DNA of 64,000 nucleotides from Syncephalis fuscata S228 (taxonomy: Eukaryota > Fungi > Zoopagomycota). The position numbers and the translations under genes were made by a program. The notes below the pieces were generated by a model, which was given only the letters and a program-made list of their open reading frames with translations, had not been told where the DNA came from and searched no databases. Position 1 is the first letter of the stretch; each line of letters opens with the position of its first letter. Shown piece after piece: positions 8,212 through 46,717 of the stretch. The stretch is from assembly GCA_025786725.1 (NCBI GenBank), contig JAHLTZ010000008.1, positions 124,001 through 188,000 of the forward strand, in the 5' to 3' direction.

Positions 8212-8794
8212 ATGCATTTCAGTCTATTACCCACAATCATTATTCTCGGTCGTCTATTTGCAACAATTATTATTAATGTTAACTCAGTAGCTTCGTTGCC
8301 GACACAGAGCGGTCGAAGGGAAGTTTCGACAAGCTGCGAAAGGCTGCCATCATAAATGGCTCATCCCCCTTGGCATCAAACCCAGCAATTGATGATCTAA
8401 AACGTATCATGCCATCCGACAAATATTTCAAAAAAGACGGATTTTACGTATATCCTGAAGAGTGGTTTGGCTACAGTAATAAATGGGCTATTGCCCATGG
8501 ATACTACGCTGCTTCGGCTAGTGTTTATGGCCAACCTGGCTATGCCGAAGAAGTTGCTGTCTATATTACCTGTACGAATAGTCTGAAACTATACAATCTA
8601 CTGGCAACAGGTCGTAAGGTGTGCAAAATTACTGCTTTGTTTGTATTGTTTACTAACTGTTGACATTTTAGCTTATGCAGATGCACTGGCAAAAATACCC
8701 CATTGAGATACCAGGCACTGGTAGACATGGAATTGCAACACTTCAATCGTTTCAGCCTGAACCTCAATATGCGTGTAATGTTTTTCTATATTAA
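8212..8794 (+). CDS. Small secreted 2-Cys protein, paralogue A, copy 1
   Basis: Signal-peptide-like MHFSLLPTIIILGRLFATIIINVNSVAS. Intron 8619-8671. Exon 2 LMQMHWQKYPIEIPGTGRHGIATLQSFQPEPQYACNVFLY*. A 1-bp G deletion near 8320 relative to copy 2. Confidence 0.75.
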
Positions 8795-10027
8795 AACATG
8801 ATAATGAGTAATATTAATAAAAGTTTTATGATAATAACACTTTAAGCTTATTTTATCTATAATTTATCAGCCATAACCTGTGGCAAACACTGAACCAGCA
8901 ATGATTCAATATTCATCACAGACTAATATGGCAAATTAAAATCTAGCATTAATACCAAATATTAATTTTATGGTTTGCTCTGCGGTAGCTTGCATTACAT
9001 CTTCAACAATTTTTGGTGTGTGCATCTGCAATAAATAGCAAGTTAAATTGAGTTAAAATGTGTTATATTCAAATTAAATACTGCAAGATTTCTATGACAT
9101 TTAACAACTAAATGTTCCATGACATTGATAGTGGCAAAAATTGGCAAGTTGTTACACCATATGTTGGTTTATGATCGATATAATGTAAAATATAGACACT
9201 ACACTGCTCATGAAAATCACAACATATGGCGAAAGTATTTCATTTTATGATAACAAAAACAGCAAGCACAGTGTAAGAAGAAAAGTACTTGTTGCGTTCT
9301 AACCTACAGTCAAGTATTCAATACATGTAGAAAAATACAACATATCTAAGAAATGAAAATGTAAATAAATTCAGTGGTAAAATAATGTATTGCAATGATA
9401 ATTAAATTTAAAACTACTAACTTAATTGTCAGCAGATGTAATGCATCATTTATGAAGCTGTACTGTTTTATAAATACTGGTAATCACCACGATCGATACA
9501 TTGTAACAAGGGGGTCGTAACTACTTCGCTTGTTACATATTGCAATATGACTATTCAGTTCATTATAGTTGAATCATGATAATTAATGGCCAATAGGAAA
9601 CAAAATTAGTATCAAAGCATTGTCAACCAACATATTGTGTTTTAACCGCTAGATAAGTACAAGTAAATATCAGAAATTAGCATTATAAGATAACGCTAAG
9701 ATAAGGTGCTGCTTGGCTAGCTGAGTTACAATTTGTTAAATAAAGCTGTAAAAATATAAATATTAGTGTGATTGTTTTTATAAACATTATGCCAATCGGC
9801 ATTATTGTAATACAAGTATGTAATAGAATTTCCTTGTTGCCATAAAAAGTAGATTGATACACGTGAAACAGCTAAAGAAAAATTATATCGTTCTGCTTAT
9901 GGATCGGAGTTTTATAATCTTGATGCCTTTGAATTGCTTTTTAAAATAAATAGATAGATTTTTCGGACTATTTTAGTTTTCAATATTAACCATCCATTAC
10001 ACTAGTAGATTTTACAAACAAACAGAC

Positions 10028-10652
10028 ATGCATTTTACTAGAACAGCTTTTGTATCAGCTTGCTATGGACTGGCAATCTACGCCAGCCTTATAGCTACTA
10101 GTTTGGCTTCTCCAGCTTCTCCACTTGAGAAATATATAATGAAAAAACAATTAGCCGAAAAACAATTAGCCGAAACACAATTCGCACCAATAGACAGCCC
10201 AGAATCATCGACAACCAAAGTATCACTTTTCGATGCCATCAGTGCAGCTTTACCACTTGGATTTAAGTTCTATTGGGGCAAGTACAAACTGAGCTTCCCA
10301 AAAGAATGGAAAAAAGACGCTAGTGGTGGCTGGGCATACACTTATGCAGTACTATCCTCCAAAGGTTCAAGGTTATATTACACCGGACAGAAAAGCGCCT
10401 ATGTGATTTGCACCGATAACACTGAGCTATTTTCAGACTTTAGCAAACAGCTTAATGTAAGTAAGCGCTGTGTAAATAGTATTATGTGCTGACTTTTACT
10501 AGGATGCATCAGAAAAGAAAGCATTGCGGACGTTGACTATTCCAGGATTAGCCGGTTTCATAACAGAGCAGCAGCCTTCCTTTAAGCCGACTAAACAAAT
10601 CAGCTGTTTGCCGGTGTATTATCAACATGCTTTGTCTAAGAATAAGCTGTAA
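10028..10652 (+). CDS. Small secreted 2-Cys protein, paralogue B, copy 1
   Basis: Signal peptide MHFTRTAFVSACYGLAIYASLIATSLA. Intron 10457-10502 (GTAAGT..CTGAC..TAG). Exon 2 DASEKKALRTLTIPGLAGFITEQQPSFKPTKQISCLPVYYQHALSKNKL*. Confidence 0.82.
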
Positions 10653-10900
10653 CGCCGACAGGTTAATGGCAGCATACACATGCTTTGTTTCACTATTGTC
10701 TTTGCCATAATAGTGTGTCGCTTGAAATAGAAATATACATGCAAAGCTGTAACTCTGATTCATGTACATTTTTGGCTACTCCAAAAGAGATACTTTGAAG
10801 CAACGTTACACGATCACAATAAATTTCTTATTTAAATCAAGCCAAATTTGCATTAGATACCAATAAAAAACTCAGTAGACGATTCCTATCTACAACTAAA

Positions 10901-11632
10901 ATGCGCTATACATTTACGACTCTTGCTATTGTCAGTTACCTCGTTGCTTTTTCTAACGACGGATTATTGTCACCTGTCAGTGCTGAGCCAATTCCCGAAA
11001 GCAGAAGAAACCAATTAACTACGGCACAAGTATAGGCTAATACTTTAAAATTCCTACAATCTAAAAATGAGCATCCTATTGAGCCGGAAAAGTTTTTGAG
11101 CGCAATAGAAAGTGCTATACCATATAAGTTGCTTTATGAAGGCCAAGGATTTAAGTTGAAATTCACCACGCCTTGGACAATTAATCAATCAAAAACTTTG
11201 TGCGAGCATCTGCTTATTACAAAAACGCAAGTTCATCGCTGTTTCGTGTAGAAAAGAAAATAGAAGTTTATGTTCAATGTCCTAGGCTTTTCCAGGATTA
11301 TCAGGTAATAGTAAATAAACTAAAGGTAAGACGGTAGTTTTGATCGTTATAGTCTGATTAAACTGACTGTATTTTTGCAGAAACTAAAGGAACCAGAAGA
11401 TCCAAAGAAATTGAAAAATCCAAGGCAAAAAATAGCTCCACTAAAAATCCCAGGTACAGATGAAATTATGGTAGATAAATTGGCGACTTTTATGCCTATT
11501 AAGCAAGCTACTTGTATGGTGTTCACATTTAAAAAACCAAATTCTCCAGAAAGCAATTTGCCATCAAACACTGATCCATCCTCAAGTGATAAGAGTAAAA
11601 GCAAAAAACTCTGGCCATTGAAAAGACTATAG
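10901..11632 (+). pseudogene. Small secreted 2-Cys protein, paralogue C, copy 1 (in-frame TAG at 11033)
   Basis: Signal peptide MRYTFTTLAIVSYLVAFSNDGLLSPVSA. Intron 11326-11380. Exon 2 contains LKIPGTDEIMVDKLATFMPIKQATCMVF. TAG here where copy 2 has CAG. Confidence 0.65.
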
Positions 11633-11912
11633 TCTCTTAAAACTAACAATTTTTTAGAAATAAACAAATATATTTAAATGCATCATACAGTTGCTGTAAT
11701 TACCATTACCATATTCGGTAATTATAATTTATTTATATTAACATTATAATTCATCGTGCTTAAAGTCATTTGTATTACCATTTACTAAACAATTATAACC
11801 ACAACATATATATTAATTAATTTATTAATTTTGTATTAGTCCTTACAAGAAAGCCAGCAACTTATTGCAATAATAATTCGATTAAAGCATGTGTTTTTTG
11901 CTAGAAAAGTGT

Positions 11913-14105
11913 TTATAACACACTAAAAGTTTGGACAATCTCCTTCATTGCCCCACCATTCCAATTTAACTTCCTTGTACTGAAGGCAAAGAAGATAATG
12001 AAACCAGCAAGCGCAATACCAGAATCCATACCAGCTGATAGAATATAGTTGAATCGGCTCCACCAGGCGTTACGGTAGCGATAGACGACAAACTGAAAAA
12101 CGAAGGCTAAAAGGAACCAGCTGGTGTACATACCAGGTTGAGCAGGTGGCATGGCGGCAGTACTGCCGATGAACACCGGGATGTGAATGTATTTAAACCA
12201 TGAGTTGGGGTACCGACGGGACAGAAGCCAGAATGGCACTGGAAGCAAAAAGCCAATAAGGAAGCACCAGTTAAGAGCAGAGTAAAAGCCAGATGAACCA
12301 AGCATACGATTTGGACCGATGGCCCCCAAATTACCGAGTAGAGTAAATGCACGGCATTAGAGCAGTTCCAGACTGGCTCATCTGGCTGACAGATATTAGG
12401 AATTAGATTAAACATGAGATAAGCAGTGCTAAGATTGACAAGACCGGCGATGATTGTGCCGACACTTTGGGCAATAAACATGTGGCGTGGCGGAATCTTC
12501 ATGTAATGGCCGAGCTTCAAATCACCAAGGAAATAATACCTTGGTTCATGGCAATGTGACCGTATGCCTTGAAGGTAACATTGGCAATGGCACGACCAGG
12601 TAAAATAAAACCGATAACCATTCCCATAATAATGTTAAGACTAAGTGTTTGATTGTGACGGCTGTAATGATACCAGCAGGAATGATAAAAATGGCGGCGA
12701 GGGCAACAGCAAGAATGACACCCCACCATGGCAGATCGATACCAAATACTTCGCACACGACAATGGCTAATACAATATTGGCAACAAACATAAGGCCATA
12801 CCACCAGTCTGGCACTTCGTCGTAGCGGTCCATCAACTTGGCGTGAATATCGTCACTTTCGGAACGAGAGTTATTGAAATGGGCCATGATTTCCTTGCCA
12901 TGATACAGAATTGTGTGAGAGATAACGGCGGCTAGACTAGCAAAACCAAAACCATTTCTTACGGCAAACATAAGGGACATTTGTGGTGGACCGACCTCAG
13001 CATATTTTGCTTCGTCAAGCTGCAAGTTTTTGTCCACAAGCGAGGTGATTGGATAATCTTCAAAGTTAGAAGTAAACAGAGCGGAACTGAAAACGGGCAT
13101 GCTTTGAGCGTTCCAAACATTGTTGAAAAGTCCATAGGGAATGAGAACCCAGGTGACTATAACGAAGCCAGCAAATATGTTGGCAGCAACCCAGAATGGT
13201 ACAGCCAATGGAGACAAAAGGAAAGATGAAATGTAGTTCCAGTCAAATGATATCGCGAGTAGACCAAGACCACGAGTGCCCGAACCAAGCTGGTTGGCCA
13301 GTTTGTTATGTGGAGCAAAGTAGCACAAAAGGGAGATTGTGCTAAGGAGGTGGCCAAGTAACCGGGAAGAAAATAGTATAGAAAACTGCCCAAAGCAGCA
13401 AACCCGAAGAAACGAAGACGCGTCATTTGGCCAGGCGCAATGTCGTCAACATCGTGCAAAGTACGGAAAAGTGTGACGTTAACAAGCTGAGCAGGCCAGA
13501 TCATAGCACTTGGACGAATGAGGAAACGACGGCCATACCAGCCAAACCGTAACCGAGACATTGTGTTGTGACGACAAGCAAGAACGATGGGAAGAAGCCA
13601 AGATCTTGTTCATAGTAGATGCGCTTAATCGTGACGATATCAACGCATAGGCAGTAGCGGCAGCGGCATTGGCACATCCAGTAATCAATACGTGCTCCTT
13701 AACGTTGAAGGGGCCCGGATTAAGGTTGAATGAAAAGCGCCTGACCAACAATGCGATTGGCAAAGTGCGAGCCATAAAGACGCCGAGTGGATAAGAGAGC
13801 AGCTGAGCCACCAGGACCGACACCGTAAGTGGAGTTTCACGGAACCAGAAGAACTGGTTGATGAACGACAATACGACGGTGAAAAAATACCTAGGACCCA
13901 AAAGCGAACGTCATACTAGGTAAAGTTGGGTCATCTTTGTTACTGACAGTGGCCCGAACAATATCGAATGGTGAGTCTTTTTCCTCGAGGTCATTTGATG
14001 ACACAGTAGAGCTTTTCTCTAAATCGTCCTGCTGAACTTTTCTGCCGGATGCAACTCACGCATCACCGACACGCGGTTATACTCATTACTATTGAGCGGG
14101 CTCAT
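11913..14105 (-). CDS. OPT-family oligopeptide transporter, copy 1 (intronless, indel-broken)
   Basis: [26 protein letters not shown] and [11 protein letters not shown] signature motifs, with many transmembrane segments. Confidence 0.93.
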
Positions 14106-16038
14106 GTTGTCATAAAATAATAAGTAAAATGTTACTCAGCTAAAAAAAATTGAATTGAAAGGTCTTAAAATATGCTGTGGCTAATTAAAAAGCAGCTGCG
14201 GACTGGCTCATAAATACCATAAATAAGGTAGCAGTCAATAGATTCAATCGTAGCTGATTGTTTTAAGTGAAGCTTTTTGATAAAGCGCAAAAATAACGAG
14301 CAAAAGCAATAATATCCGTGTCGATAATTGATAATCAAATTCGTTAAAATAAAACGTAAATGCACAGCGTCGCTATGGTATCGTCAGTGACGGGAAACTG
14401 TGCGGCAGATAGATGTATAGAAGAAAGAAGGCAAATGAGATAGATGCTAAATTTGTGAATAGTTGCGACGAGACAAGCAAAATAGCGGATTTTTATAGTG
14501 TTCTTGTAGTTGGCGTAAAGGCAAAACAACTGGTTAACAATTGCCAATACGCTGCTTCACAAAGTTACTCACCTGCCCATACTATAGACATAACATTAAG
14601 TCAGCCACAGTGAACAACAGGTGACGAGTGAAACGCCGATTAGACAACATGAGAACACTTGTGGATAGTGAAATGTTGACGAAAGTTGGAGCAATGTTTG
14701 TGTAGTGTATGTTGGTTTTAGCTAAATGCCTAACACCGCTAAACTGGTCGTTAGTGCAGCGTTCAATGGTGTGACCGCGGCGTTTTTTTCGCCATCAATA
14801 AATAATATTACATCAATCTACTTTGCTGTATAACAAAAAATATGACGCAAATAGTCTTTAGAATCAAGCATTACGCGTGCTAATAATAAATTTTGAGTAA
14901 CATGTAACTGTGTGTCGTGTAAGCAGAATATTTCATTAATTGCAACAACAAAGCTTATCCCTCATTCTGGGTAATATAAATGAATAAAACTATTGTGTGC
15001 CATTTGTTTGGCACAAACAGAGGCCATATCGCCAATGAGCAACTTCGTTTGCAAAGATCATGTGAACAATATGTGGAGTCGCCCAATTGTGCACAGGTGT
15101 ACCTATCCTTGTTCAGCTTTTAGCGCTATTTTGAGGCCTTGTAACCGCTAATGTCCATATTAGGCTGCTTTACCAATAGCTATCAATAATACACAAATGG
15201 AATTCATCAAATTATTGGCTATTGTTTTACTACCTGATATGCCATTACTCCTATAACCGTTTTCAAACATTACTTTTATCCCACGGCGTTTGATATTTAC
15301 GCCAGCAATAGTTGTTTCTAGTTGAGGCCAAACTCGAAGTTTCACATCCACAAATAGCTGTATATACGGGTTCGCTAAACAGTAATGCATATTTAGCCTA
15401 AATTAGTAGTAGCACTATTTATTGATCAACAAACAAGGCATTTCTACACGTCAGGTCTTTACACTCAAGGTGTGCAGGTTAAAAATACCTTCATGCTTAG
15501 TAAAAAAATATTGATCTGTCTATAGCTATTAGATGCTGCCAAGTTTTGATAAACGATCAGATAGAGCGCAAAATTATAAATAAAAATCAGCATGCTGCGT
15601 TTTAATTATGGTAGATAGAGGAGGTGTTACTAGCCCAGTAGTTAAGGCAGCGTCTCCCAAGCTGAAGGCTTTGGGTTCTTTAGTTTGAATCAATCCTTAA
15701 GTGGAAATCCCCCAGTTTTTCTAGTTAAACAAGCTCAATTAAATTAAATAAGTGGGTCTAGAAACAAGACCTTGGCCAGAATAGCTGAAAAGAAACAATT
15801 GTAATTAACTTCAAGAGAATAGTGCTGTTTAGCACCATTTAAAAGAAATGACCTCCGCGTAAAGTTTATATGGACCGGATTTTGTGCAAAAACGTGGCTA
15901 TCCACCCATTAGTTTGGAGAAGTCCAAAATAGTGGAAAGCAGCACAAATTCTTTAATTATGCACAGCAGGACTCATAAGTTTTCTAAAATAAAATAAAAA
16001 TAAAGAGAAATTAAAAAATACGCCGTTATTAAATTTTA

Positions 16039-16626
16039 GGGGATTTTGAAAATACATTGTTTTAAATTTCATTATAATAAGGTCCTCTTTTCAAATTTTA
16101 TTTATTGAAATATATTGTTTTAAAAATCTACCAAATGTCTACCAAGCTATTTTAAAATGCCGTATTTAACAATATTGAAATACTGAAGCCTCTGTTGACA
16201 AGTTTAATTTGTTAGCAATTGAAATTTTAAGAGGAAAAAAGTGATTCAACAAGATTACAGCTCATTTGTCTTCATGAAGACCGTTCCAGCAACAAATATT
16301 GGTTTATTTCGGCTGCTAGAAAGCAGAAAACCAGCCTATTAAAGACTGCTAATGCAATCTTGAACGTTTTGACGACTATCCATACAATTCTGGTAATAAT
16401 AATATTATATTTATTACTAAATATATGCAAATAATGTTGCTACACTTTCAAATGTAAAATCAACATATATACAAGTAAAAACATCAAGATAAGCGCATGT
16501 TAATTATTAATATACACCAACAATTGCAATGATCAACAGATGCTATTGTTTGTTATTAGTATTAAATGACTTTGACTTATAGCAATAGTTTAAATCAACA
16601 GATTTATAACAAAAGTTGTAATTGAT
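16039..16626 (+). mobile_element. Left arm (TIR plus decayed 5' part) of a Mutator-like TIR element
   Basis: The ~83-bp end (16039-16121) is an inverted match to 33498-33570. The whole arm has an inverted copy at 42505-43094. Confidence 0.6.
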
Positions 16627-17160
16627 TGTTACGCTTCTTGTTTTAAAAATTGCAACTTGATGACCAAGCAACACATTATCCTGTCGCTATCCTATAACAT
16701 TAATTTCTGATGCTTATTAACGCTTACTTAACGCTCAGAATAAATGTGTTGTTTGGTTGTATTGCTTTTATAATAAGATTATTCCTTATTGGTCGTTAAT
16801 TACCACAGTTTAACTATAATAAACTGAATAACTTGTATGACACTAAGTAGAAATAATATTGGACTAGAAACTTATTATCCTTTATTATATTGAACAAAGC
16901 TATCATTATATAGTAAACACAACTAATAATAGAACTTGAATGCCTTGTGGTATTTCATCATTAGTGCAGCATATTAGTTCAGGTGGCTGCTCATATGCTC
17001 ACAACTAACAAGTAGCTACTCGTCATATTGTCGTAATAGACATTTGTTACTAGTAATCAGTACTAATATTTGATAGTTATATTATTTTTGTGATCAATCA
17101 CACGATATATCACTTAGTCACACTTTTACAAGACCTGTCCGGAATATCAGAACAGTAATA
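16627..17160 (+). mobile_element. Solo LTR, copy 1
   Basis: TGTTAC...GTAATA ends (family consensus TGTTAC/GTAACA). Homologous to three other copies. Flanks TGAT/GTAT. Confidence 0.7.
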
Positions 17161-17454
17161 GTATGTTACAACCTTATTCTTTCTTTTTATGTACATACTT
17201 TAAACCATGTTATGCAAAAAAAAAATTAGTTGCATTCGATCATTATTTACTCAAATAAATTATTACAAATATAAATGTATATTTTGATTGAATTAAAACG
17301 CAATTATTAAATTACAAACAATATTAAATAAATTATTTTATATGATATTATTATTTAAATAATGTTTATTTACAAAATTTTGTTAATACAGTTAATTTGA
17401 CTGTTAAATAACATATAAGTTTAGTTCATTAGCTTTATAGTTGTTATTAAAGTT

Positions 17455-17920
17455 ACTTACCAAAATACGGACAAATTCATTGTAGCTAACACGGTCCGCA
17501 TCGTCTCGTGTCGTGATTTTTGGCTGTCATTGCGTCAACATGTTGCTTTATATCATTTTGCTGACAATCTCCAACTGCAGTGTGTAATGCCGATTTAAGC
17601 TGATCTGTCATCAAACATTCTTTTATCCATATCATAAGCTTTGAAATTACGCCAAGTTTAATACGCTGATCACCGATTAATTGCAAGATTTGCTTTTTAT
17701 GCTTAACAAATTCTAGCATCTTGACTTGGCCATCCTTGTTGCAATCCAGATTAGCAAATAGTTTACTGAGAGTCTCGTCTGACACTGGTGAACCAGAAGC
17801 AATAAGAGCCTTTTTTAGCTCGGCTTCTGTAATAGCACGATCTCCATCGGTATCATAGCTTGAAAATGGGTCGACAAAATTCAATGAGGCTTGGTTAACT
17901 TGCTTGTAATCGAGTACCAT
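17455..17920 (-). CDS. Calmodulin-like EF-hand protein
   Basis: EF loops DTDGDRAITEAE and DCNKDGQVKMLE. Frameshifted third and fourth loops (YDMDK.., ..GTVSYNEFVRIL). The 3' end is approximate. Confidence 0.75.
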
Positions 17921-19432: not shown

Positions 19433-19852
19433 TTATAAATCAACTACTGATAAAAGGTCAGCATCGGATAAAAAAATACTTTTTGCCTCTTTAGCTTCCT
19501 TGTTACGACGATCTTTCGCCTCAAGCTTATCGAGTATCTGTGATGGGTCTTGTCGTTGATGACTGTGATTCTTGGCAGAAGGCACGAACTTTCTAACGCT
19601 TGTTGGCATTTGTTGTTCACTCGATAAATCATTGTGACGTCCCATAGTTTTGGATAGCTGATTTGTATCCTGCATAGCTATGCCAAGTTCTTCGTTAGAC
19701 GAACCTAGTGAAGCTTCAGCTATAGCGGCCTCGGCATGCCCATCCGACGAGCTTGAGCCCGAGTTCAAAAACGACTGCCGCAAAGACGATACCGGATGAG
19801 GGTATTTCTTCTGCGAAGCCATCAGCTGCTGAATAAACAACGGGCCGTCCAT
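19433..19852 (-). CDS. Hypothetical low-complexity protein (~139 aa)
   Basis: GC-richer ORF island starting at ATG 19852, with no recognisable domain. Confidence 0.5.
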   Translation of the reverse strand: MDGPLFIQQLMASQKKYPHPVSSLRQSFLNSGSSSSDGHAEAAIAEASLGSSNEELGIAMQDTNQLSKTMGRHNDLSSEQQMPTSVRKFVPSAKNHSHQRQDPSQILDKLEAKDRRNKEAKEAKSIFLSDADLLSVVDL

Positions 19853-20026
19853 TTCGACAATGAATAAAATAGAGTTCTTGGTAGCAACAGAACAATAGAG
19901 TATAAGAGTAATGGTTGCCAACAAACTGATAATGTAGAATGTACAAATATTTCAGAAAATGATACTAAATAGTGGGAGATTCAACACCGATACACCTTGG
20001 GAACCAAATTTATTAAGACATTTGTT

Positions 20027-32652: not shown

Positions 32653-32761
32653 TTATAAATATCAATATATAACAAAATTATATTATGTGCAGTTATTTAC
32701 TCTAATGAACAATATGTCTATAATATACTGATCTTTATTCGTTTTTATAATATTATTCTAT

Positions 32762-33326
32762 TGTTACGCTTCTTGTTTTAAAAATCGCAACTTGGATGAC
32801 CAAGCAACACATTATCCTGTCGCTATCCTATAACGTTAATTTCTAATGCTTATTAACGCTTACCTTAACGCTCAGAATACAATGTGTTGTTTGGTTGTAT
32901 TGCTTTTATAATAAGATTATTCCTTATTGTCGTTGATTACCACAGTTTAACTATAATAAACTGAATAACTTGTATGACACTAAGTAAAATAATATTGGAC
33001 TAGAAACTTGATTATTCTTTATTGATATTGAATAAAGCTATCATTATATAGTAAACACAACTAATAATAGAACTTGAATGCCTTGTGGTATTTCATCATC
33101 AGCGCAGCATATTAGTTTAGGGGCTGCTCATATGTTCACAACTAACAAGTAGCTACTCGTCATATTGTCGTAATAGACATTTGTTACTAGTGATCGGTAC
33201 TAATATCCGATAGGTATATTATTCTTGCAATCAATCACATGCGACTTTAACTGGTGATCCAATCACACGATATATCACTTAGTCACACTTTTACAAGACC
33301 CTGTCCGGAATATCAGAACAGTGATA
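32762..33326 (+). mobile_element. Solo LTR, copy 2
   Basis: TGTTAC...GTGATA ends. Direct repeat of 16627-17160. Flanks CTAT/ATAT. Confidence 0.7.
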
Positions 33327-33626
33327 ATATAAATTTTGATAATAAGCTAAAATGAATTAAATTATAAAATTAATCTTTATTGAAAAACAAATACAAACTA
33401 CTAATGAAACAGCTATCAAGAAAAGAAAACGTGTTATTAAAGAATGTTTAATTTGTAGTAAACGCCATTACAAGAAAACGAAGTGTGGGGTAAATAAAAA
33501 ACAATATATTTAATAAATAAAATTTGAAAAGAGGGATTTAGTATAATGAAATTTAAAAACGGTGTATTTATTTTATAAAAAACAGGAAAATAAATAAATT
33601 TAAAAGTGTATTTTCCAAATTTTTCC
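33327..33626 (+). mobile_element. Right arm of the Mutator-like element (zinc-knuckle remnant plus TIR)
   Basis: 33361-33513 translates to ..KKRKRVIKECLICSKRHYKKTKCGVNKKQYI*, with the stop inside the inverted repeat. Confidence 0.6.
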
Positions 33627-33883
33627 TATAATAAAGCCATTTTGGTCACAAACTGCCTTAATAAGTGCTAACTTAGCAGGCAAATAATAATCACATCTCT
33701 TTAGCCATTAATCATCTATCAATCTGCATTTAATAACCAAGTGCTTACGCCAGTATTTAAGTCGCGCTTTTCGCTAACTGTTTGCCAATATTCAGTAGCT
33801 TTTTTCTTGTTATTTTGTTTTAGTTTAACGCTCACACTTTTAACGTCCATACCTCCAACATCCATTCTAACCTTAAGCTTATT

Positions 33884-34468
33884 ATGCATTTCAGTCTATT
33901 ACCCACAATCATTATTCTCGGTCGTCTATTTGCAACAATTATTATTAATGTTAACTCAGTAGCTTCGTTGCCGACACAGAGCGGTCGAAGGGGAAGTTTC
34001 GACAAGCTGCGAAAGGCTGCCATCATAAATGGCTCATCCCCCTTGGCATCAAACCCAGCAATTGATGATCTAAAACGTATCATGCCATCCGACAAATATT
34101 TCAAAAAAGACGGATTTTACGTATATCCTGAAGAGTGGTTTGGCTACAGTAATAAATGGGCTATTGCCCATGGATACTACGCTGCTTCGGCTAGTGTTTA
34201 TGGCCAACCTGGCTATGCCGAAGAAGTTGCTGTCTATATTACCTGTACGAATAGTCTGAAACTATACAATCTACTGGCAACAGGTCGTAAGGTGTGCAAA
34301 ATTACTGCTTTGTTTGTATTTGTTTACTAACTGTTGACATTTTAGCTTATGCAGATGCACTGGCAAAAATACCCCATTGAGATACCAGGCACTGGTAGAC
34401 ATGGAATTGCAACACTTCAATCGTTTCAGCCTGAACCTCAATATGCGTGTAATGTTTTTCTATATTAA
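33884..34468 (+). CDS. Small secreted 2-Cys protein, paralogue A, copy 2
   Basis: Intact exon-1 frame from the ATG, with the same intron and exon 2 as copy 1. Confidence 0.8.
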
Positions 34469-35703
34469 AACATGATAATGAGTAATATTAATAAAAGTTT
34501 TATGATAATAACACTTTAAGCTTATCTTTATCTATAATTTATCAGCCATAACCTGTGGCAAACACTGAACCAGCAATGATTCAATATTCATCACAGACTA
34601 ATATGGCAAATTAAAATCTAGCATTAATACCAAATATTAATTTTATGGTTTGCTCTGCGGTAGCTTGCATTACATCTTCAACAATTTTTGGTGTGTGCAT
34701 CTGCAATAAATAGCAAGTTAAATTGAGTTAAAATGTGTTATATTCAAATTAAATACTGCAAGATTTCTATGACATTTAACAACTAAATGTTCCATGACAT
34801 TGATAGTGGCAAAAATTGGCAAGTTGTTACACCATATGTTGGTTTATGATCGATATAATGTAAAATATAGACACTACACTGCTCATGAAAATCATAACAT
34901 ATGGCGAAAGTATTTCATTTTATGATAACAAAAACAGCAAGCACAGTGTAAGAAGAAAAGTACTCGTTGTGTTCTAACCTACAGTCAAGTATTCAATACA
35001 TGTAGAAAAATACAACATATATAAGAATGAAAATGTAAATAAATTCAGTGGCAAAATAATGTATTGCAATGATAATTAAATTTAAAACTACTAACTTAAT
35101 TGTCAGCAGATGTAATGCATCATTTATGAAGCTGTACTGTTTTATAAATACTGGTAATCACCACGATCGATATATTGTAACAAGGGGGTCGTAACTACTC
35201 CGCTTGTTACATATTGCAATATGAACTATTCAGTTCATTATAGTTGAATCATGATAATTAATGGCCAATAGGAAACAAAATTAGTATCAAAGCATTGTCA
35301 ACCAACATATTGTGTTTTAACCGCTAGATAAGTACAAGTAAATATCAGAAATTAGCATTATAAGATAACGCTAAGATAAGGTGCTGCTTGGCTAGCTGAG
35401 TTACAATTTGTTAAATAAAGCTGTAAAAATATAAATATTAGTGTGATTGTTTTGTAAAACATTATGCCAATCGGCATTATTGTAATACAGGTATGTAATA
35501 GAATTTCCTTGTTGCCATAAAAAGTAGATTGATACACGTGAAACAGCTAAAGAAAAATTATATCGTTCTGCTTATGATATCGGAGTTTTATAATCTTGAT
35601 GCCTTTGAATTGCTTTTTAAAATAAATAGATAGATTTTTCGGACTATTTTAGTTTTCAATATTAACCATCCATTACACTAGTAGATTTTACAAACAAACA
35701 GAC

Positions 35704-36328
35704 ATGCATTTTACTAGAACAGCTTTTGTATCAGCTTGCTATGTACTGGCAATCTACGCCAGCCTTATAGCTACTAGTTTGGCTTCTCCAGCTTCTCCAC
35801 TTGAGAAATATATAATGAAAAAACAATTAGCCGAAAAACAATTAGCCGAAACACAATTCGCACCAATAGACAGCCCAGAATCATCGACAACCAAAGTATC
35901 ACTTTTCGATGCCATCAGTGCAGCTTTACCACTTGGATTTAAGTTCTATTGGGACAAGTACAAACTGAGCTTTCCAAAAGAATGGAAAAAAGACGCTAGT
36001 GGTGGCTGGGCATACACCTATGCAGTACTATCCTCCAAAGGTTCAAGGTTATATTACACCAGACAGAAAAGCGCCTATGTGATCTGCACCGATAACACTG
36101 AGCTATTTTCAGACTTTAGCAAACAGCTCAATGTAAGTAAGCGCTGTGTAAATAGTATTATGTGCTGACTTTTACTAGGATGCATCAGAAAAGAAAGCAT
36201 TGCGGACGTTGACTATTCCAGGATTAGCCGGTTTCATAACAGAGCAGCAGCCTTCCTTTAAGCCGACTAAACAAATCAGCTGTTTGCCGGTGTATTATCA
36301 ACATGCTTTGTCTAAGAATAAGCTGTAA
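35704..36328 (+). CDS. Small secreted 2-Cys protein, paralogue B, copy 2
   Basis: As copy 1, with G14V, G84D and G120R substitutions visible in the ORF track. Confidence 0.82.
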
Positions 36329-36576
36329 CGCCGACAGGTTAATGGCAGCATACACATGCTTTGTTTCACTATTATCTTTGCCATAATAGTGTGTCGCTTG
36401 AAATAGAAATATACATGCAAAGCTGTAACTCTGATTCATGTACATTTTTGGCTACTCCAAAAGAGATACTTTGAAGCAACGTTACACGATCACAATAAAT
36501 TTCTTATTTAAATCAAGCCAAATTTGCATTAGATACCAATAAAAAACTCAGTAGACGATTCCTATCCACAACTGAA

Positions 36577-37307
36577 ATGCGCTATACATTTACGATTCTT
36601 GCTATTGTCAGTTGCCTCGTTGCTTTTTCTAACGACGGATTATTGTCACCTGTCAGTGTGAGCCAATTCCCGAAAGCAGAAGAAACCAATTAACTACGGC
36701 AAATTACAGGCTAATACTTTAAAATTCCTACAATCTAAAAATGAGCATCCTATTGAGCCGGAAAAGTTTTTGAGCGCAATAGAAAGTGCTATACCATATA
36801 AGCTGCTTTATGAAGGCCAAGGATTTAAGTTGAAATTCACCACGCCTTGGACAATTAATCAATCAAAAAACTTTGTGCGAGCATCTGCTTATTACAAAAA
36901 CGCAAGTCCATCGCTGTTTCGTGTAGAAAAGAAAATAGAAGTTTATGTTCAATGTCCTAGGCTTTTCCAGGATTATCAGGTAATAGTAAATAAACTAAAG
37001 GTAAGACGGTAGTTTTGATCGTTATAGTCTGATTAAACTGACTGTATTTTTGCAGAAACTAAAGGAACCAGAAGATCCAAAGAAATTGAAAAATCCAAGG
37101 CAAAAAATAGCTCCACTAAAAATCCCAGGTACAGATGAAATTATGGTAGATAAATTGGCAACTTTTATGCCTATTAAGCAAGCCACTTGTATGGTGTTCA
37201 CATTTAAAAAATCAAATTCTCCAGAAAGCAATTTGCCATCAAACACTGATCCATCCTCAAGTGATAAGAGTAAAAGCAAAAAACTCTGGCCATTGAAAAG
37301 ACTATAG
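36577..37307 (+). CDS. Small secreted 2-Cys protein, paralogue C, copy 2
   Basis: Same structure as copy 1 with no nonsense codon. Two 1-bp deletions in exon 1 are probably consensus errors. Confidence 0.7.
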
Positions 37308-37590
37308 TCCTCTTAAAACTAACAATTTTTTAGAAATAAACAAATATATTTAAATGCATTATACAGCTGCTGTAATTACCATTACCATATTCGGTAATTA
37401 TAATTTATTTATATTAACATTATAATTCATCGTGCTTAAAGTCATTTGTATTACCATTTACTAAACAATTATAACCACAACATATATATTAATTAATTTA
37501 TTAATTTTGTATTAGTCCTTACAAGAAAGCCAGCAACTTATTGCAATAATAATTCGATTAAAGCATAATTGTTTTTTGCTAAAAAAGCGT

Positions 37591-39776
37591 TTATAACACA
37601 CTAGAAGTTTGGACAATCTCCTTCATTGCCCCACCATTCCAATTTAACTTCCTTGTACTGGAAGGCAAAGAAGATAATAAAACCAGCGAGCACAATACCA
37701 GAATCATACCAGCCGATAGAACATAGTTGAATCGACTCCACCAGACGTTACGGTAGCGATAGACGACAAACTGGAAGACGAAGGCTAAAAGGAACCAGCT
37801 GGTGTACATACCAGGTTGAGCAAGTGGCATGATGGCAGTACCGCTGGTGAACACCGGGATGTGAATGTATTTGAACCATGAGTTGGGGTAGCGACGGGAC
37901 AGAAGCCAGAATGGCACTGGAAGCAAAAAGCCAATAAGGAAGCACCAGTTAAGAGCAGAGTAAAAGCCAGATGAACCAAGCATACGATTTGGCCGATGGT
38001 GCCCCAAATGACCGAGCAAGAGTATATGATACGGGCATTAGAACAGTTCCAGACTGGCTCATCTGGCTGACAATATTAGGAATTAGATGGAACATGAGAT
38101 AAGCAGTGCCAAGATTGACAAGACCGGCGATGATTGTGCCGACACTTTGAGCAATGAACATGTGGCGTGGCGGAATCTTCATGTAATGGCCGAGCTTCAA
38201 ATTGCTAAGAAATGCAATACCTTGGTACATGGCAATGTGGCCGTATGCCTTGAAGGTAACATTGGCAATGGCACGACCAGGTAGAATAAAACCGATAATC
38301 AGCTCCGTAATAATGTCAATACCAGGTGTTTGATTGGTGACGGCTGTAATAATACCAGCAGGAATGATGAAAATGGCGGCGAGGGCAACAGCAAGAATGA
38401 CACCCCACCATGGCAGATCGATACCAAATACTTCGCACACGACAATGGCTAATACAATATTGGCAACAAACATAAGGCCATACCACCAGTCTGGCACTTC
38501 GTCGTAGCGGTCCATCAACTTGGCGTGAATATCGTCACTTTCGGAACGAGAGTCGCGGAAACGGCCATGATTTCCTTGCCATGATACAGAATTGTGTGTG
38601 AAATAACGGCGGCTAGACTAGCAAAACCAACACCATATGCTACAACAAACAAAAGGACATTTGTGGTGGCCGACCTCGGCTATTTTGCTTCGTCAAGCTG
38701 CAAGTTTTTGTCACAAGCGAGTGATTGGATAATCTTCAATGTAGAAGTAAACAGAGCGGAACTGAAAACGGGCATGCTTTGAGCGTTCCAAACATTGTTG
38801 AAAAATCCATAGGAAATTAAACCAGGTGAATAAATGAAGCCAGCAAATATGTTGGCAGCAACCCAGAATGGTACAGCCAATGGAGACAAAAGAAAGATGA
38901 AATGTAGTTCCAGTCAAATGATATCGCGAGTAGACCAAGACCACGAGTGCCCGAACCAAGCTGGTTGGCCAGTTTGTTATGTGGAGCAAAGTAGCACAAA
39001 AGGGAGATTGTGCTAAGGGAGGTGGCCAAGTAACCGGGAAGAAAATAGTATAGAAAACTACCCAAAGCAGCAAACCCGAAGAAACGAAGACGCGTCATTT
39101 GGCCAGGCCAACGTCATCGACATCGTGCAAGTACGGAAAAGTGTGACGTTAACAAGCTGGCAGGCCAGATCATAGCACTTGGACGAATGAGGAAACGACG
39201 GGCCATACCAGCCAAACCGTAACCGAGACATTGTGTTGTGACGACAAGCAAGAACGATGGAAGAAGCCAAGATCTTGTCCATAGTAGATGCGCTTAATCG
39301 TGACGATATCAACCGCATAGCGTAGCGGCAGCGGCATTGGCACATCCAGTAATCAATACGTGCTCCTTAACGTTGAAGGGGCCCGGATTAAGGTTGAATG
39401 AGAAGCAACCTAACCAACAATGCGATTGGGCAAAGTGCGAGCCATAAAGACACCGAGTGGATAAGAGAGCAGCTGAGCCACCAGGACCGACGCCGTAAGT
39501 GGAGTTTCACGGAACCAGAAGAACTGGTTAATGAACGACAATACGACGGTAAAAAAATACCTAGGACCCAAAAGCGGAACGTCATACTAGGCAAAGTCGG
39601 GTCATCTTTGTTACTGACAGTGGCCCGAACAATATCGAATGGTGAGTCTTTTTCCTCGAGGTCATTTGATGACACAGTAGAGCTTTTCTCCAAATCGTCC
39701 TGCTGAAACTTTTCTGCCGGATGCAACTCACGCATCACCGACACGCGGTTATACTCGTTACTATTGAGCGGCTCAT
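37591..39776 (-). CDS. OPT-family oligopeptide transporter, copy 2
   Basis: Same OPT motifs as copy 1, plus [15 protein letters not shown] and [11 protein letters not shown]. Confidence 0.93.
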
Positions 39777-41661
39777 GTTGTCATAAAATAATAGAGTAAA
39801 ATGTTACTCAGCTAAAAAAAATTGAATTGAAAGGTCTTAAAATATGTTGGCTATTAAAAAGCAGCTGCGGACTGGCTCATAAATACCATAAATAAGGTAG
39901 CAGTCAATAGATTCAATCGTAGCTGATTGTTTAAGTGAAGCTTTTTGATAAAGCGCAAAAATAACGAGCAAAAGCAATAATATCGTGTCATAATTGATAA
40001 CAAATTCGTTAAAATAAAACGTAAGTGCACAGCGTCGCTATTGGTATCGTCAGTGACGGGAAAACTGTGCGGCAGATAGATGTATAGAAGAAAGAAGGCA
40101 AATGAGATAGATGCTAATTTGTGAATAGTTGCGACGAGACAAGCAAAATAGCGGGTTTTATAGTGTTCTTGTAGTTGGCGTAAAGGAACAGCTAGTTAAC
40201 AATTGCCAATACGCTGCTTCACAAAGTTACTCACCTGCCCATACTATAGACATAACATTAAGTCAGCCACAGTAACAAAGGTGACGAGTGAAACGCTGAT
40301 TAGACAACATGAGAACACTTGTGGATAGTGAAATGTTGACGAAAGTTGAGCAATGTTGTGTAGTGTATGTTGGTTTTAGCTAAATGCCTAACACCGCTAA
40401 ACTGGTCGTTAGTGCAGCGTTCAATGGTGTGACCGCGGCGTTTTTTTCGCCATCAATAAATAATATTACATCAATCTACTTTGCTGTATAACAAAAAATA
40501 TGACGCAAATAGTCTTTAGAATCAACATTACGCGTGCTAATAATAAATTTTGAGTAACATGTAACTGTGTGTCGTGTAAGCAGAATATTTCATTAATTGC
40601 AACAACAAAGCTTATCCCTCATTCTGGGTAATATAAATGAATAAAACTATTTGTGCCATTTGTTTGGCACAAACAGAGGCCATATCGCCAATGAGCAACT
40701 TCGTTTGCAAGAGATCATGTGAACAATATGTGGGGTCGCCCAATTGTGCACAGGTGTACCTATCCTTGTTCAGCTTTTAGCGCTATTTTGAGGCCTTGTA
40801 ACCGCTAATGTCCATATTAGGCTGCTTTACCAATAGCTATCAATAATACACAAATGGAATTCATCAAATTATTGGCTATTGTTTTACTACCTGATATGCC
40901 ATTACTCCTATAACCGTTTTCAAACATTATTTTTATCCCACGGCGTTTGATATTTACGCCAGCAATAGTTGTTTCTAGTTGAGGCCAAACTCGAAGCTTC
41001 ACATCTACAAATAGCTGTATATAACGGGTTCGCTAAACAGTAATGCATATTTAGCCTAAATTAGTAGTAGCACTATTTATTGATCAACAAACAAGGCATT
41101 TCTACACGTCAGGTCTTTACACTCAAGGTGTGCAGGTTAAAAATACCTTCATGCTTAGTAAAAAAATATTGATCTGTCTATAGCTATTAGATGCTGCCAA
41201 GTTTTGATAAACGATCAGATAGAGCGCAAAATTATAAATAAAAATCAACATGCTGCGTTTTAATTATGGTAGATAGAGGAGGTGTTACTAGCCCAGTAGT
41301 TAAGGCAGCGTCTCCCAAGCTGAAGGCTTTGGGTTCTTTAGTTTGAATCAATCCTTAAGTGGAAATCCCCAGTTTTTCTAGTTAAACAAGCTCAATTAAA
41401 TTAAATAAGTGGGTCTAGAAACAAGACCTTGGCCAGAATAGCTGAAAAGAAACAATTGGAATTAACTTCAAAAGAATAGTGCTGTGTAGCATCATTTAAA
41501 AGAAAATGACCTCCGCGTAAAGTTTATATGGACCGGATTTTGTGCAAAAACGTGGCTGTCCACCCATTAGTTTAGAGAAGTCCAAAATAGTAGGAAACAG
41601 CACAAATTCTTTATTATGCACAGCAGGACTCATAAGTTTTCTAAAATAAAATAAAAATAAA

Positions 41662-43094
41662 GAGAAATTAGTATAATGAAATTTAAATAGGGATTTTAAA
41701 ATAATTTAATAACGGCGTATTTTTCCTAATTTCTCTTTCAAATTTTATTTATTAAATATATTGTTTTTTATTTACCCCACACTTCGTTTTCTTGTAATGG
41801 CGTTTACTACAAATTAAACATTCTTTAATAACACGTTTTCTTTTCTTGATAGCTGTTTCATTAGTAGTTTGTATTTGTTTTTCAATAAAGATTAATTTTA
41901 TAATTTAATTCATTTTAGCTTATTATCAAAATTTATATTATCACTGTTCTGATATTCCGGACAGGGTCTTGTAAAAGTGTGACTAAGTGATATATCGTGT
42001 GATTGGATCACCAGTTAAAGTCGCATTGATTGATTGCAAGAATAATATACCTATCGATATTAGTACCGATCACTAGTAACAAATGTCTATTACGACAATA
42101 TGACGAGTAGCTACTTGTTAGTTGTGAACATATGAGCAGTCCCCTAAACTAATATGCTGCGCTGATGATGAAATACCACAAGGCATTCAAGTTCTATTAT
42201 TAGTTGTGTTTACTATATAATGATAGCTTTATTCAATATCAATAAAGAAATAATCAAGTTTCTAGTCCAATATTATTTTACTTAGTGTCATACAAGTTAT
42301 TCAGTTTATTATAGTTAAACTGTGGTAATTAACGACCAATAAGGAATAATCTTATTATAAAAGCAATACAACCAAACAACACATTGTATTCTGAGCGTTA
42401 AGGTAGGCGTTAATAAGCATCAGAAATTAATGTTATAGGATAGCGACAGGATAATGTGTTGCTTGGTCATCCAAGTTGCGATTTTTAAAACAAGAAGCGT
42501 AACAATACAATTACAACTTTTGTTATAAATCTGTTGATTTAAACTACTGCTATAAGTCAAAGTCATTTAATACTAATAACAAACAATAGCATCTGTTGAT
42601 CATTGCAATTGTTAGTGTATATTAACTAATTACACATGCGCTTATCTTGATGTTTTTACTTGTATATATGTTGATTTTACATTTGAAAGTGTAGCAACAT
42701 TATTTGCAGTATATTTAGTAATAAATATAATATTATTATTACCAGAATTGTATGGATAGTCGTCAAAACGTTCAAGATTGCATTGGGCAGTCTTTAATAG
42801 GCTGGTTTTCTGCTTTCTAGCAGCCGAAATAAACCAATATTTGTTGCTGAAACGGTCTTCATGAAGACAAATGAGCTGTAATCTTGTTGAATCACTATTT
42901 TTCCTCTTAAAATTTCAATTGCTAACAAGTTAAACTTGTCAGCAGAGGCTTCAGTATTTCAATATTGTTAAATATGGCATTTTAAAATAGCTTGGTAGAC
43001 ATTTGGTAGATTTTTTAAAACAATATATTTCAATAAATAAATTTGAAAAGAGGATTTATTATAATGAAATTAAAAAACTGTATTTTCAAATTCC
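41662..43094 (-). mobile_element. Compact decayed Mutator-like TIR element containing a solo LTR
   Basis: Both arms are joined through one LTR, with inverted termini containing ctc(t)tttcaaattttatttatt(g)aaatatattgtttt and a CCHC remnant. No TSD found. Confidence 0.6.
41939..42504 (-). mobile_element. Solo LTR, copy 3
   Basis: Reverse complement of copies 1 and 2. Flanks in element orientation GTAT/ATAT. Confidence 0.7.
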
Positions 43095-43302
43095 TTTAAA
43101 TTATTAATGTTTAATTGTGTCATAAATCTTGGACAATATAATGACTACCAATTAAATTTAAATGATGCTGTATCCAAATACCAAAACATACAATACAATA
43201 TTAAATTGCAATGTGATGATTATTAAAAAACATATTGTTTTATATATACTAACTGAACGCCAATGGCCAAATTACAGCGTGAATGGTAGTGAAACAAGTC
43301 GA

Positions 43303-45442
43303 TATCTATAATAAATACAACTAATAATAAACAAGTAGCTTTTATCAATAATGTATAATCAATAGACAATATACTAATCTATATAATTTTATATTCAAAA
43401 TAACACATCATAATAAATAGAATAGATGGTATGATTATGACGACTGTATTGTAGGTAGATTGTCATTCCAAACAGTTTAATGATTTTTGAAGGTTGTGTG
43501 GCATATACATATGCTCAAAATACACGTCTAGCTTATGTTTATTATAAATGCGCGCTATGATCGCCTGTCTTTTAGCAAATTATTGTTGACAGTAATGGTT
43601 CTTGACAGTCCAGCTATTGCCCTTTTCTTGTCTTATTTACTCATCATGGTGGATCATATTACTATGCTTGTTACTGTGCGTGTTGCCGCATTTGCCGACG
43701 CAGCTCACTTGTTCTGTTTTCATGGTGCTGTAAATGGCTGCGGTATTGCGTTAGTTAACAAGACACTTGCTTGCATCACTGATATAGCATTATTATAATA
43801 TCGCTGATGGCAACAAGATACATGACTGTCCTGGTATGTGAAGGCAGTAGTACATTGAAGTTGTTTGCATCACCTATCAAAACAGTAATCAGCGATACTT
43901 AGCTGAATGAGCAGAATACCGAATGGTTTCATGCATTTTGCTATCGATTGCTACTGATGTCAATTGGCTTAAAGGCATATTCTATTTAGTTAGAAGCTCA
44001 ATGGAGAAAGAACCAAACAGCAGTCGTTCTATTGCATTGCAACGGATTGCTTATCATCATGATGGCATGCGGAAATGCTTTATTGCTGAGCAATACCTGC
44101 CAATAGGAAAAATGTTTACTATGTAATATTGGCATTTGTGTTGACTATTTCGCAATGATGTCAACTATAGATTTCAGATAGATTCATAGTGGCTGTTAAT
44201 GAGCAAGCAAATAGCATAAGCATTATTTGCAAACAGTCGTGCATTATTTCTATCTGGCCAGTGCATCTAGGCTCAATTGTGCGACCGCGTCAGTTCTTCT
44301 GTTAATGCAATAATGCATACATTCGTGGTCACTGGATGATGATTAGTCATTTTGAGTTAACAGCTAAAAGCAACTAACTATTATATATTAGAAAAAACAC
44401 ACATTTTTGATCTTGCTTATAATCAAAAATGCATGGATACTATTGCAAGTCATCAAGGGGAAATGTTTTTATTGAAAGTTACGGATGAAATAGTAATTAT
44501 ATCTAGTAGATTATTTCATCGCTCAGATACCACTACTACATTCAAATGGAACATATATGGTTTTGAATTGCTATCTAGGACATGGTCCGCGCTGCTTAAT
44601 GCAAGGTGAAATTTGCTTTAAGAAATCTGGTAAATCCGTAATTCTTGTTAGAAAACTAGATGATAATTGAGTTTTATTGAAGACAATTTGCAGTTAACTG
44701 CTAATATGCTAGCACACACCGATATAGAAACACTATGTCTACCCTTAATCGTCATTCCACTCCAAGTATGAGTATGTATAGCGATTTTTTTATTATATAT
44801 TGAAAATTTTGCTATTCGTGAATCCAAAAACAACAGCACATTTACAGCAATATATTTAGTTCATTTAAGTCGTACTAAAACTTGGATAGGATAGATTCAA
44901 AGTATTTGTACGAAAAACCATTTAAATCTCCAGATGCTATCTCAAGATTTAACCATCTGATTAATTATTTTTTATTGCTAAGTGGTACAGCTAACACAAA
45001 AAACGTGCTACTGTTAGTAGATAGCGAAGGCTATAAAATAGCAGATTTGTCATTTTAATTGCTATCAACATAATACGTATTACTATTTATTAAACAAGAT
45101 TTACGATTATTTTATCTTGTATTGCAATCAGAGTGCTATAAAATATAATAGTGATCAGCCAATGACCATTACAACACCTGATGCAATATAATCTACTATA
45201 TTACCATTATTACTTAAAGTAAGAAACAAAACGTATACTAATTGTAATTACAAAAATCAATAACTAAATGGCATGATACGGCAATAGAATAGGTATGTAC
45301 ATAATATGTATGTTGTATTATGAATGTAAGATTTATTAATGTTATTAACAAGAGACTATGTATAATGAATATGAATACAGGTTAATATCTTTTATTTTAG
45401 TATAAATAAAACCCAAAAACAAAATAACATATCTGAATAATA
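43303..45442 (+). pseudogene. Inverted duplicate of the F-box pseudogene block at 26762-28897
   Basis: Near-identical short ORFs on the opposite strand (43535-43798 and 43923-44126). Confidence 0.7.
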
Positions 45443-46043
45443 GCTAATAGTTTACATTATTTATTTATTATAAGCCAATTATAATTCCAATAGTTTACCA
45501 AAATTATTTATATTAAATAATGCATAAAAGTCAAAGTTTTAACAAATAAAACTAGAACATTAGTAAACATGGCAGTTGATGAATCAAACGAGTAAGGTGC
45601 ATGTTACATTCAAATACCAAACTTGCAACATGATATGTAATTGTAGTGTGATGATTGCAAAAAACACGCTATACTCTTACGTACAAATACAATTGCAATG
45701 AATATCCTACAGAGTTCAAACGTGAAACAGGCATTTGTCTTTTTTACCTTAAAACTAGCTATAACTCTTTTTGAAGATTAAAACCTCTACATCGTTTTTT
45801 TTAGAAATTGCATGTGTATTTCTTACAAAAAAATACATGATTAATATATATATGGAAATCCTACACGTGTATTTAAAATGGACGGCTCACTAAATTTATG
45901 TTGTATGCCTATAAAGGAAAACAATGAAAAAACAACTGTAAATTAATCGATAAGGCGGTGTTTAGAATTTGGTATATATACAATCGTCTCAATTGACTAT
46001 TTTGATATCTTCTTATTCATCAATTCCTTGTTTGCTAACAACT

Positions 46044-46717
46044 ATGTATCAGCGCTACACTATATCAATCGTCATTGCTAGCTGTCTAATGCTACTATTA
46101 TGCAGCTTCAACTCCATGCAAAGTAACGCCACGCCAACACCTGGATTGGTACAAAGTCGATTAACCAACCTGTATGAGATGATTGCCACATTTCCTGGAT
46201 CATCTCTACCTAGCGCCAAAACGTCACATAAATTGTATGGATATACAACAATAGCAGGTCTGGCTCAAATCATCATGCCTGCTGATTCTCCATACGATTG
46301 GGACTTTTATAGATTGCGATACACTGGTACATGGAAAAATACGTGGAAAAGACATGGGCAATCAATCATGCTATGGTATCAATAGAGCTTGATAAAGATT
46401 TTTATACTGAAGCAGAAGAGCCGGTTTGGGTTATATGTACAACCTCAATGGGCGTATTTAAAATTTTATGAACGATATCAAAGTAAGTGGCATGCCAATC
46501 AATGATGATTAATAGCTAAACTATTCTATGTTTAGAGCGGCATGTTTGAGGCAAAGAAAGAAAGAAAAGATCAATACTAAACTCTATCACAATACCAGGA
46601 ACCGCAGCACAAATTAAAGATAAGGGATTTTACTTTATGCCTAACGATCAGCTTGCATGCTTAGTGTACACATACATCAACTCTTCTAATAGAAAAAGAA
46701 AAAGATTATCTTTCTAA
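46044..46717 (+). CDS. Small secreted 2-Cys protein, paralogue D
   Basis: Signal peptide MYQRYTISIVIASCLMLLLCSFNSMQSNA, EEPVWVICTTS, intron 46483-46535, and exon 2 ..ITIPGTAAQIKDKGFYFMPNDQLACLVYTYINSSNRKRKRLSF*. Contains indels. Confidence 0.75.

Follow-up and report, generated by a model that had tools for sequence, protein, structure and literature searches.

Gene models of the seven loci

The window analysed here is a stretch of 64,000 nucleotides (nt) of Syncephalis fuscata (contig C350, positions 124001-188000), and it contains seven loci of a family of small genes encoding putative secreted proteins with two cysteines. Four gene types had been outlined in an original prediction, A, B and C in two copies each (A/A', B/B' and C/C') and D once. 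Gene models were constructed by reading the three frames, and the copies are described as assembled, with their breaks unmended. All seven loci were found where they had been placed, all on the forward strand:

A, 8212-8794, + strand: exon 1 8212-8618, intron 8619-8671 (53 nt, TACTAAC branch site), exon 2 8672-8794
B, 10028-10652, + strand: exon 1 10028-10456, intron 10457-10502 (46 nt, GTAAGT...TAG), exon 2 10503-10652; intact
C, 10901-11632, + strand: exon 1 10901-11325, intron 11326-11380, exon 2 11381-11632; broken
A', 33884-34468, + strand: exon 1 33884-34291 (136 codons), intron 34292-34345, exon 2 34346-34468; intact
B', 35704-36328, + strand: exon 1 35704-36132, intron 36133-36178, exon 2 36179-36328; intact
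C', 36577-37307, + strand: exon 1 36577-37000, intron 37001-37055, exon 2 37056-37307; broken
D, 46044-46717, + strand: exon 1 46044-46482, intron about 46483-46550, exon 2 46551-46717; broken as assembled

The layout was common to all seven loci and comprised a predicted signal peptide, a variable linker, a W...W-A...V-Y-V-x-C-T block, one intron, and I-P-G...F...C after it. The blocks that had been described earlier, P..(F/Y)..W, the first cysteine within YITCT, YVICT, YVQCP or WVICT, and IPG-x11-F-x-P-x-x-Q-x-x-C in exon 2, were all present. The intron signals were normal for a fungus, with donors GTAAGT, GTGTGC or GTAAGA, CTRAY branch sites (TACTAAC, TGCTGAC) and a terminal AG. The model of B has 143 + 49 = 192 amino acids (aa), and because the public 192-aa records of S. 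fuscata have the same length and an identical splice junction, the splicing of B is consistent with the public annotation; KAI9597032.1, the representative of the 90% cluster of B, was 98% identical to the B product.

The window holds only a part of the family. Profile matches in S. fuscata were found at 14 loci, including A, B and C in four copies each, D once and a fifth type, E, once on another contig (C317). The four types foreseen for the window were all there, and beyond it lie E and two more A-B-C cassettes, the latter upstream on the same contig. Searches with A', C' and D were run exon by exon, while full-length searches and folds used public protein records.

Conserved intron and synteny in three species

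Nine gene types were compared: A to E of S. fuscata, P0008, P0009 and P0011 of S. plumigaleata, and P0012 of S. pseudoplumigaleata. An intron, of phase 0 in A-C, had been proposed about 14-15 codons after the first cysteine. It was located in phase 0 and exactly 15 codons past this cysteine in A, B and E, and also in C when the donor is GTAAGA at 11326; this is 21 nt downstream of the GT at 11305 that had been proposed, and the public model uses 11326, too. The same phase and spacing were present in P0009, P0011 and P0008, and in P0012 the intron lies 13 codons past the cysteine. In D there are 44 nt between the cysteine and the intron, compared to 45 in the other types, the difference being one of the frame breaks of D.

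The E locus was collinear on both sides with the loci of P0008 and P0012, the neighbours including RMI1, PALP/CBS and HSF. The E-type genes are therefore positional orthologues in the three species and not transposon cargo, occupying one syntenic single-copy locus amid housekeeping genes. Also P0011, the A-type orthologue (28-32% identity), is a single-copy gene amid housekeeping genes. The closest relative of D was S. plumigaleata KAI8056167.1, the public model of the D-like P0009. The gene of P0009 adjoins a block of iPGM, metacaspase and phosphodiesterase genes, and the same block is situated 5-16 kb from D, on the opposite side. The genes of the window at 47388-61828 (MFS sugar transporter, FAM210-like, metacaspase, phosphodiesterase, metacaspase and iPGM) form a block collinear with S. 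plumigaleata.

The family had been thought to evolve fast, and this was borne out by the orthologous pair E and P0008, which were 39% identical while most of the flanking genes were about 55-96% identical.

Statistical support and taxonomic range

Local alignments of the S. fuscata types, evaluated against 500 shuffles, confirmed that the paralogues align significantly. For exon 2 all six pairs had z = 4.2-13.6. Most pairs of exon 1 had z of 5-16 in round figures (B-E 16.5, B-D 7.5, D-E 7.0, A-B 5.2, B-C 5.0), and the exon 1 alignment of C and D was at background level. In the multiple alignment the order of the blocks was identical in every gene type.

When 1.84 billion representative proteins were searched with a profile made only of S. 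fuscata sequences, three proteins of S. plumigaleata and one of S. pseudoplumigaleata matched, none of them included in the profile, with E-values from 8e-9 to 1.5e-4, and no credible relatives outside Syncephalis were found among these proteins. A word-indexed protein search, made with exon 1 of B and with the family alignment, returned only family members. As judged from these searches, the family is restricted to Syncephalis, within it to S. fuscata, S. plumigaleata and S. pseudoplumigaleata.

No known domain had been recognized in the proteins earlier, and at the sequence level this was upheld: no Pfam family matched the exon pieces, the six full-length proteins gave only sub-threshold noise in Pfam (E 0.04-0.27), and the profile search of PDB sequences gave only cyclin-like noise (E > 2). 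No hidden Markov model (HMM) of Pfam linked the proteins to a known housekeeping family. The feature search of ESM Atlas with B and with the P0011 domain gave no usable match. The literature search found no paper on this Syncephalis family and none on any secreted protein consisting of a kinase N-terminal lobe (N-lobe) only.

One candidate of the exhaustive search, P0010 (E 1.4e-6), was rejected as a family member. It is an unnamed NCBI protein of 2497 aa on a contig of 16.6 kb, and its score sums ten partial repeat matches of 2-8 bits each over a stretch spanning the family intron junction. The protein includes at least 10 repeats of about 50 residues (Y-W-x-C-x-x-C-x-K-L-F-S-D-E…I-P-A), weakly like the Cys-helix-IPG stretch of the family, and has no Pfam match. 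A decayed relic was observed on contig C334 (C334:11666-14746, minus strand, at about 1590-1280 of that stretch) as a V-Y-I-I-C-T-D-Y-I-E-L-Y fragment, with a C-like N-terminal piece (…AEPIP…) about 200 nt downstream and an HMM E-value of 3e-4 in a small database.

Protein features

The precursors are about 175-215 aa long and consist of an N-terminal signal-peptide-like segment, a variable linker of 30-50 aa and an alpha/beta domain of about 120 aa. The signal peptide that had been predicted was matched in all nine types by an N-terminal hydrophobic segment with small-residue cleavage sites at about residues 20-29, according to a heuristic based on hydropathy and small residues, and by the same heuristic none of the nine types had a later membrane-like segment. 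The public model of P0009 begins at an internal Met, and a clear signal peptide is gained when translation starts 51 nt further upstream, at an in-frame ATG (JAIXMF010000003.1). An Arg-Arg pair is present a few residues past the predicted cleavage site in A and C (8311-8316 / 33983-33989; 10995-11000), not in all types, and may mark a Kex2-type pro-piece site.

Both cysteines were invariant in the nine types, as the two-cysteine character ascribed to the family implies, and the mature part has two cysteines in eight of them, only the S. pseudoplumigaleata protein having more. The proteins end 5-40 residues past the second cysteine. The columns conserved in at least 75% of the nine types included two Trp, an Ala, V-Y-[ILVM]-x-C-T, an aromatic residue six residues on, [ILVM]-P, a Phe, the second Cys and a Tyr. 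No conserved charged or polar residue of catalytic type was found across the nine types. Conservation is thus structural only, which argues for a scaffold with variable surfaces and not for an enzyme.

Amplified cassette and repeat context

Self-comparison of the window identified two copies of an 8.2 kb unit, 7958-16121 and 33627-41767, with 97% identity, and this duplication explains the pairs A/A', B/B' and C/C'. Altogether four copies of this A-B-C-OPT cassette are present on contig C350, with pairwise identities of 95.4-97%, each with an OPT oligopeptide transporter gene:

Cassette copy 1, C350:70328-78508: upstream of the window
Cassette copy 2, C350:79865-87550: upstream of the window
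Cassette copy 3, window 7958-16121: A, B, C and the OPT transporter gene
Cassette copy 4, window 33627-41767: bracketed by inverted copies of the dispersed repeat at 32755-33532 and 41732-42511

The region had been described as rearranged by transposable elements, in line with the dispersed repeat that flanks the cassettes. The repeat is about 570-780 bp long, has at least 40 copies genome-wide on many contigs with 85-94% identity, and is probably a long terminal repeat (LTR) or a solo LTR. Sequence of the dispersed repeat was also observed at 16028-17100 of the window.

Between copies 3 and 4, 75 indel events were counted alongside 172 substitutions. The indels are mostly of 1 nt and concentrated in the OPT part (12000-15000 vs 37700-40700), reflecting either fast-decaying OPT copies or a poor assembly consensus in the repeated region. 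The ratio is far too high for ordinary divergence, which suggests consensus errors, and some of the frame breaks reported below may thus be artefacts. Stops created by substitution are less likely to be artefactual than the frame breaks.

State of the gene copies

As assembled, nine of the 14 S. fuscata loci were broken, and in the window four of the seven (A, C, C' and D) were not intact. The A type is open in cassette copies 2 and 4 and has a frame break in copies 1 and 3, that of copy 3 being located near 8317-8322. The B type is open in copies 1, 3 and 4 and broken at the third codon in copy 2. No copy of the C type is intact, and three independent lesions account for this: copies 1 and 2 have a common stop just ahead of the first cysteine, copy 3 has an in-frame TAG at 11033-11035 together with a frame break near 11190, and copy 4 (C') has frame breaks near 36658 and 36701, with a different frame open from 36662. 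The reading frame of D changes twice, near 46320-46345 and 46440-46482. In E, the segment encoding the signal peptide and the remainder of the gene are in different frames. No cassette copy of A, B or C has a broken exon 2, and exon 2 of D and E is likewise open. The many broken copies suggest birth-and-death turnover rather than a fully active arsenal.

Extra introns in place of the frame breaks were rejected for A and D and considered doubtful for E, because they would be 22-59 nt long and either have no CTRAY branch site or remove the conserved W-A block, and because the orthologues have a single intron. In the public model of E the break is bridged by a 47 nt intron without branch-site consensus, absent from both orthologues. 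Breaks or stops were bridged by extra short introns in the public models KAI9597031.1 (A copy 1), KAI9597033.1 and KAI9597037.1 (C copies 1 and 2) and KAI9598046.1 (E). With conserved blocks deleted or branch sites missing, these bridging models are probably artefacts.

Predicted fold

The AlphaFold2 model of B, made of an alignment of 9 rows, was poor, with a predicted local distance difference test score (pLDDT) of 59.7. The model of P0011 was usable (14 rows, pLDDT 76.5, predicted template modelling score 0.58). In it a short helix is followed by four strands, a long helix and, at the C-terminus, two strands; Cys123 ends the strand that leads into the long helix (117-124), and Cys174 is part of the final one (173-179).

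When the P0011 model was compared with 48,161 representative chains of PDB, N-lobes of the protein kinase fold filled the first 48 of the 50 rows listed. The first match was CLK2 (Z 9.7, 96 residues, 2.8 Å), followed by PRPF4B, CLK3, DYRK1A and Sky1p at Z 8.9-9.0. The matches covered residues 56-181 of the model and stopped at the C-terminus of the protein. According to the calibration of the search tool, a best Z of 7-8 is common for unrelated models. In the Foldseek search of PDB only kinase-fold chains were among the rows listed (E 0.014-0.1, probability up to 0.99), one of them being the kinase-containing lanthipeptide synthetase CuvL, and the shape search of ESM Atlas gave Pkinase clusters with template modelling scores of 0.42-0.46 by query. 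Also the poor B model had CLK2, PRPF4B, HIPK3 and Sky1p first, at Z 4.3-4.6. The C-terminal strand C-[LM]-V-[FY] presumably resembles the pre-hinge strand of CMGC kinases.

The earlier statement that no known domain is recognizable holds for the sequences, but the predicted structure resembles kinase N-lobes. A kinase N-lobe-like fold is moderately supported as a predicted fold, and descent of the family from a kinase is regarded as a lead only.

The pattern search for CMGC kinase genes of S. fuscata gave 38 sites. One of these, antisense to an open reading frame that is acyl-CoA oxidase-like as judged from the sequence with no family scan, was rejected as fortuitous, and no kinase motif was found in the DNA examined.

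Interpretation

The gene family is most probably explained as a Syncephalis-restricted group of non-enzymatic, disulfide-stapled secreted binding proteins, which are candidate effectors of mycoparasitism. The protein would enter the secretory pathway, and in A and C the dibasic site just past the signal peptide may release a short pro-piece. One disulfide would join the strand before the main helix to the C-terminal strand and so staple the domain, and the protein would have a non-enzymatic binding role in the extracellular space or where the haustorium meets the host mould. In S. fuscata the family has undergone lineage-specific amplification and loss.

Several points weigh against this explanation. 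That nine of the 14 S. fuscata loci are broken speaks against strong current selection on most copies, and the ratio of nonsynonymous to synonymous polymorphism (pN/pS) among the cassette copies, with 3-10 substitutions only, was uninformative. With only two cysteines the proteins fall short of what is commonly called cysteine-rich among effectors, where four or more are usual. Furthermore, most alignment rows are common to both structure models, and the earlier one, that of B, is poor.

The family resembles the lineage-specific small secreted effector-candidate families of parasitic fungi in having small proteins with a signal peptide and no domain recognizable by sequence, in occurring in one genus only, in diverging rapidly and in changing copy number in repeat-flanked DNA. 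In contrast to such families, it has two cysteines allowing one possible disulfide and no cysteine-rich pattern, it belongs to a parasite of other fungi, and one of its types has stably kept a syntenic position in three species.

The structural matches allow a more specific explanation, according to which the protein is a stand-alone secreted descendant or mimic of a kinase N-lobe that has lost nucleotide binding and occupies partners docking on kinase N-lobes. This explanation is compatible with the effector reading and more specific on origin and mechanism, and it is regarded as unlikely, if less so than the alternatives that follow. The predominance of kinase N-lobes with CMGC kinases first, the agreement of Foldseek, the ESM Atlas shape search and even the poor B model, and the ending of the matches where the protein ends all point towards it. 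However, neither Pfam nor the PDB profile search nor language-model features gave a signal at the sequence level: Pkinase (PF00069) gave no match at E ≤ 10 for the exon pieces or the six full-length proteins, and no kinase was found at E ≤ 10 in the PDB profile search. The Gly-rich loop, the strand-3 Lys and the helix-C Glu were not among the columns conserved in at least 75% of the types. The highest Z of the comparison is only moderately above the background level of the tool, kinases are so numerous in PDB that any such sheet-plus-helix arrangement fills the list, and the models have alignment rows in common.

A narrower version of this explanation is doubted somewhat more. In it the family would be a secreted, N-lobe-only offshoot of CMGC type, in which a Cys-Cys link replaces the missing support of the C-terminal lobe (C-lobe) and which acts as a decoy for host factors docking on N-lobes. 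The nucleotide-binding residues would be gone, and the disulfide would run from the strand before helix C to the strand before the hinge.

The proteins are like the N-lobes of kinases (PF00069; among the CMGC kinases CLK, DYRK, SRPK and PRP4) in the predicted succession of strands, helix and two strands, matched over about 90-96 residues, and in ending at the end of the N-lobe. They differ from kinases in lacking an HMM match and the catalytic C-lobe with its HRD and DFG motifs as well as the Gly-rich loop, the catalytic Lys and the helix-C Glu, and in having a signal peptide and an invariant cysteine pair. With the rhoptry kinases and pseudokinases ROP5 and ROP18 of Toxoplasma the family would share a kinase-type fold, here a predicted one, in a protein secreted by a parasite, and ROP5B was in the match list at Z 6.7. 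Unlike ROP5 and ROP18, which are fully two-lobed and recognizable by sequence, the Syncephalis proteins would correspond to the N-lobe only and are unrecognizable by sequence.

Another explanation is a secreted or cell-wall protein serving the own biology of the parasite, such as the spore or merosporangium wall, adhesion or development, and not directed at the host. It agrees with the single-copy E locus that is syntenic amid housekeeping genes in the three species, with the similar surroundings of the A and D types in S. plumigaleata, and with the purely structural nature of the conserved residues. On the other hand, the sequence turnover is rapid in comparison to the neighbouring genes, amplification and decay of the cassette are specific to the lineage, and the family is confined to a genus of obligate mycoparasites. 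These three points fit host-facing proteins better, none of them being decisive, and we find the explanation improbable, about as much as the CMGC decoy.

That the copies in the S. fuscata window are mostly dead relics with no present function there is very improbable. In favour of it, none of the four C copies is intact, owing to three independent lesions, two of the four A copies and one of the four B copies are broken, the frame of D changes twice, and the public models bridge breaks with unlikely introns. Against it, three B and two A copies can be read throughout and have intact splice sites, exon 2 is open in every copy, and the indel excess between copies 3 and 4 suggests consensus errors, so that some of the breaks are perhaps unreal.

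Significance

To our knowledge, almost nothing is known about the means by which Syncephalis and other zoopagalean mycoparasites manipulate the moulds they infect. The candidate effector family offers a defined set of genes for experiments, being restricted to one genus, with clear gene models, a conserved intron, positional orthologues in three species and a testable cysteine pair. The locus illustrates the repeat-mediated amplification of a cassette followed by its decay, and it also shows how public gene models cover broken copies with invented introns. If the likeness to kinase N-lobes is true, it would mean a new route by which a parasite comes from half of a housekeeping enzyme fold to a secreted protein, and an N-lobe decoy would then be a new way of deriving an effector from such a fold.

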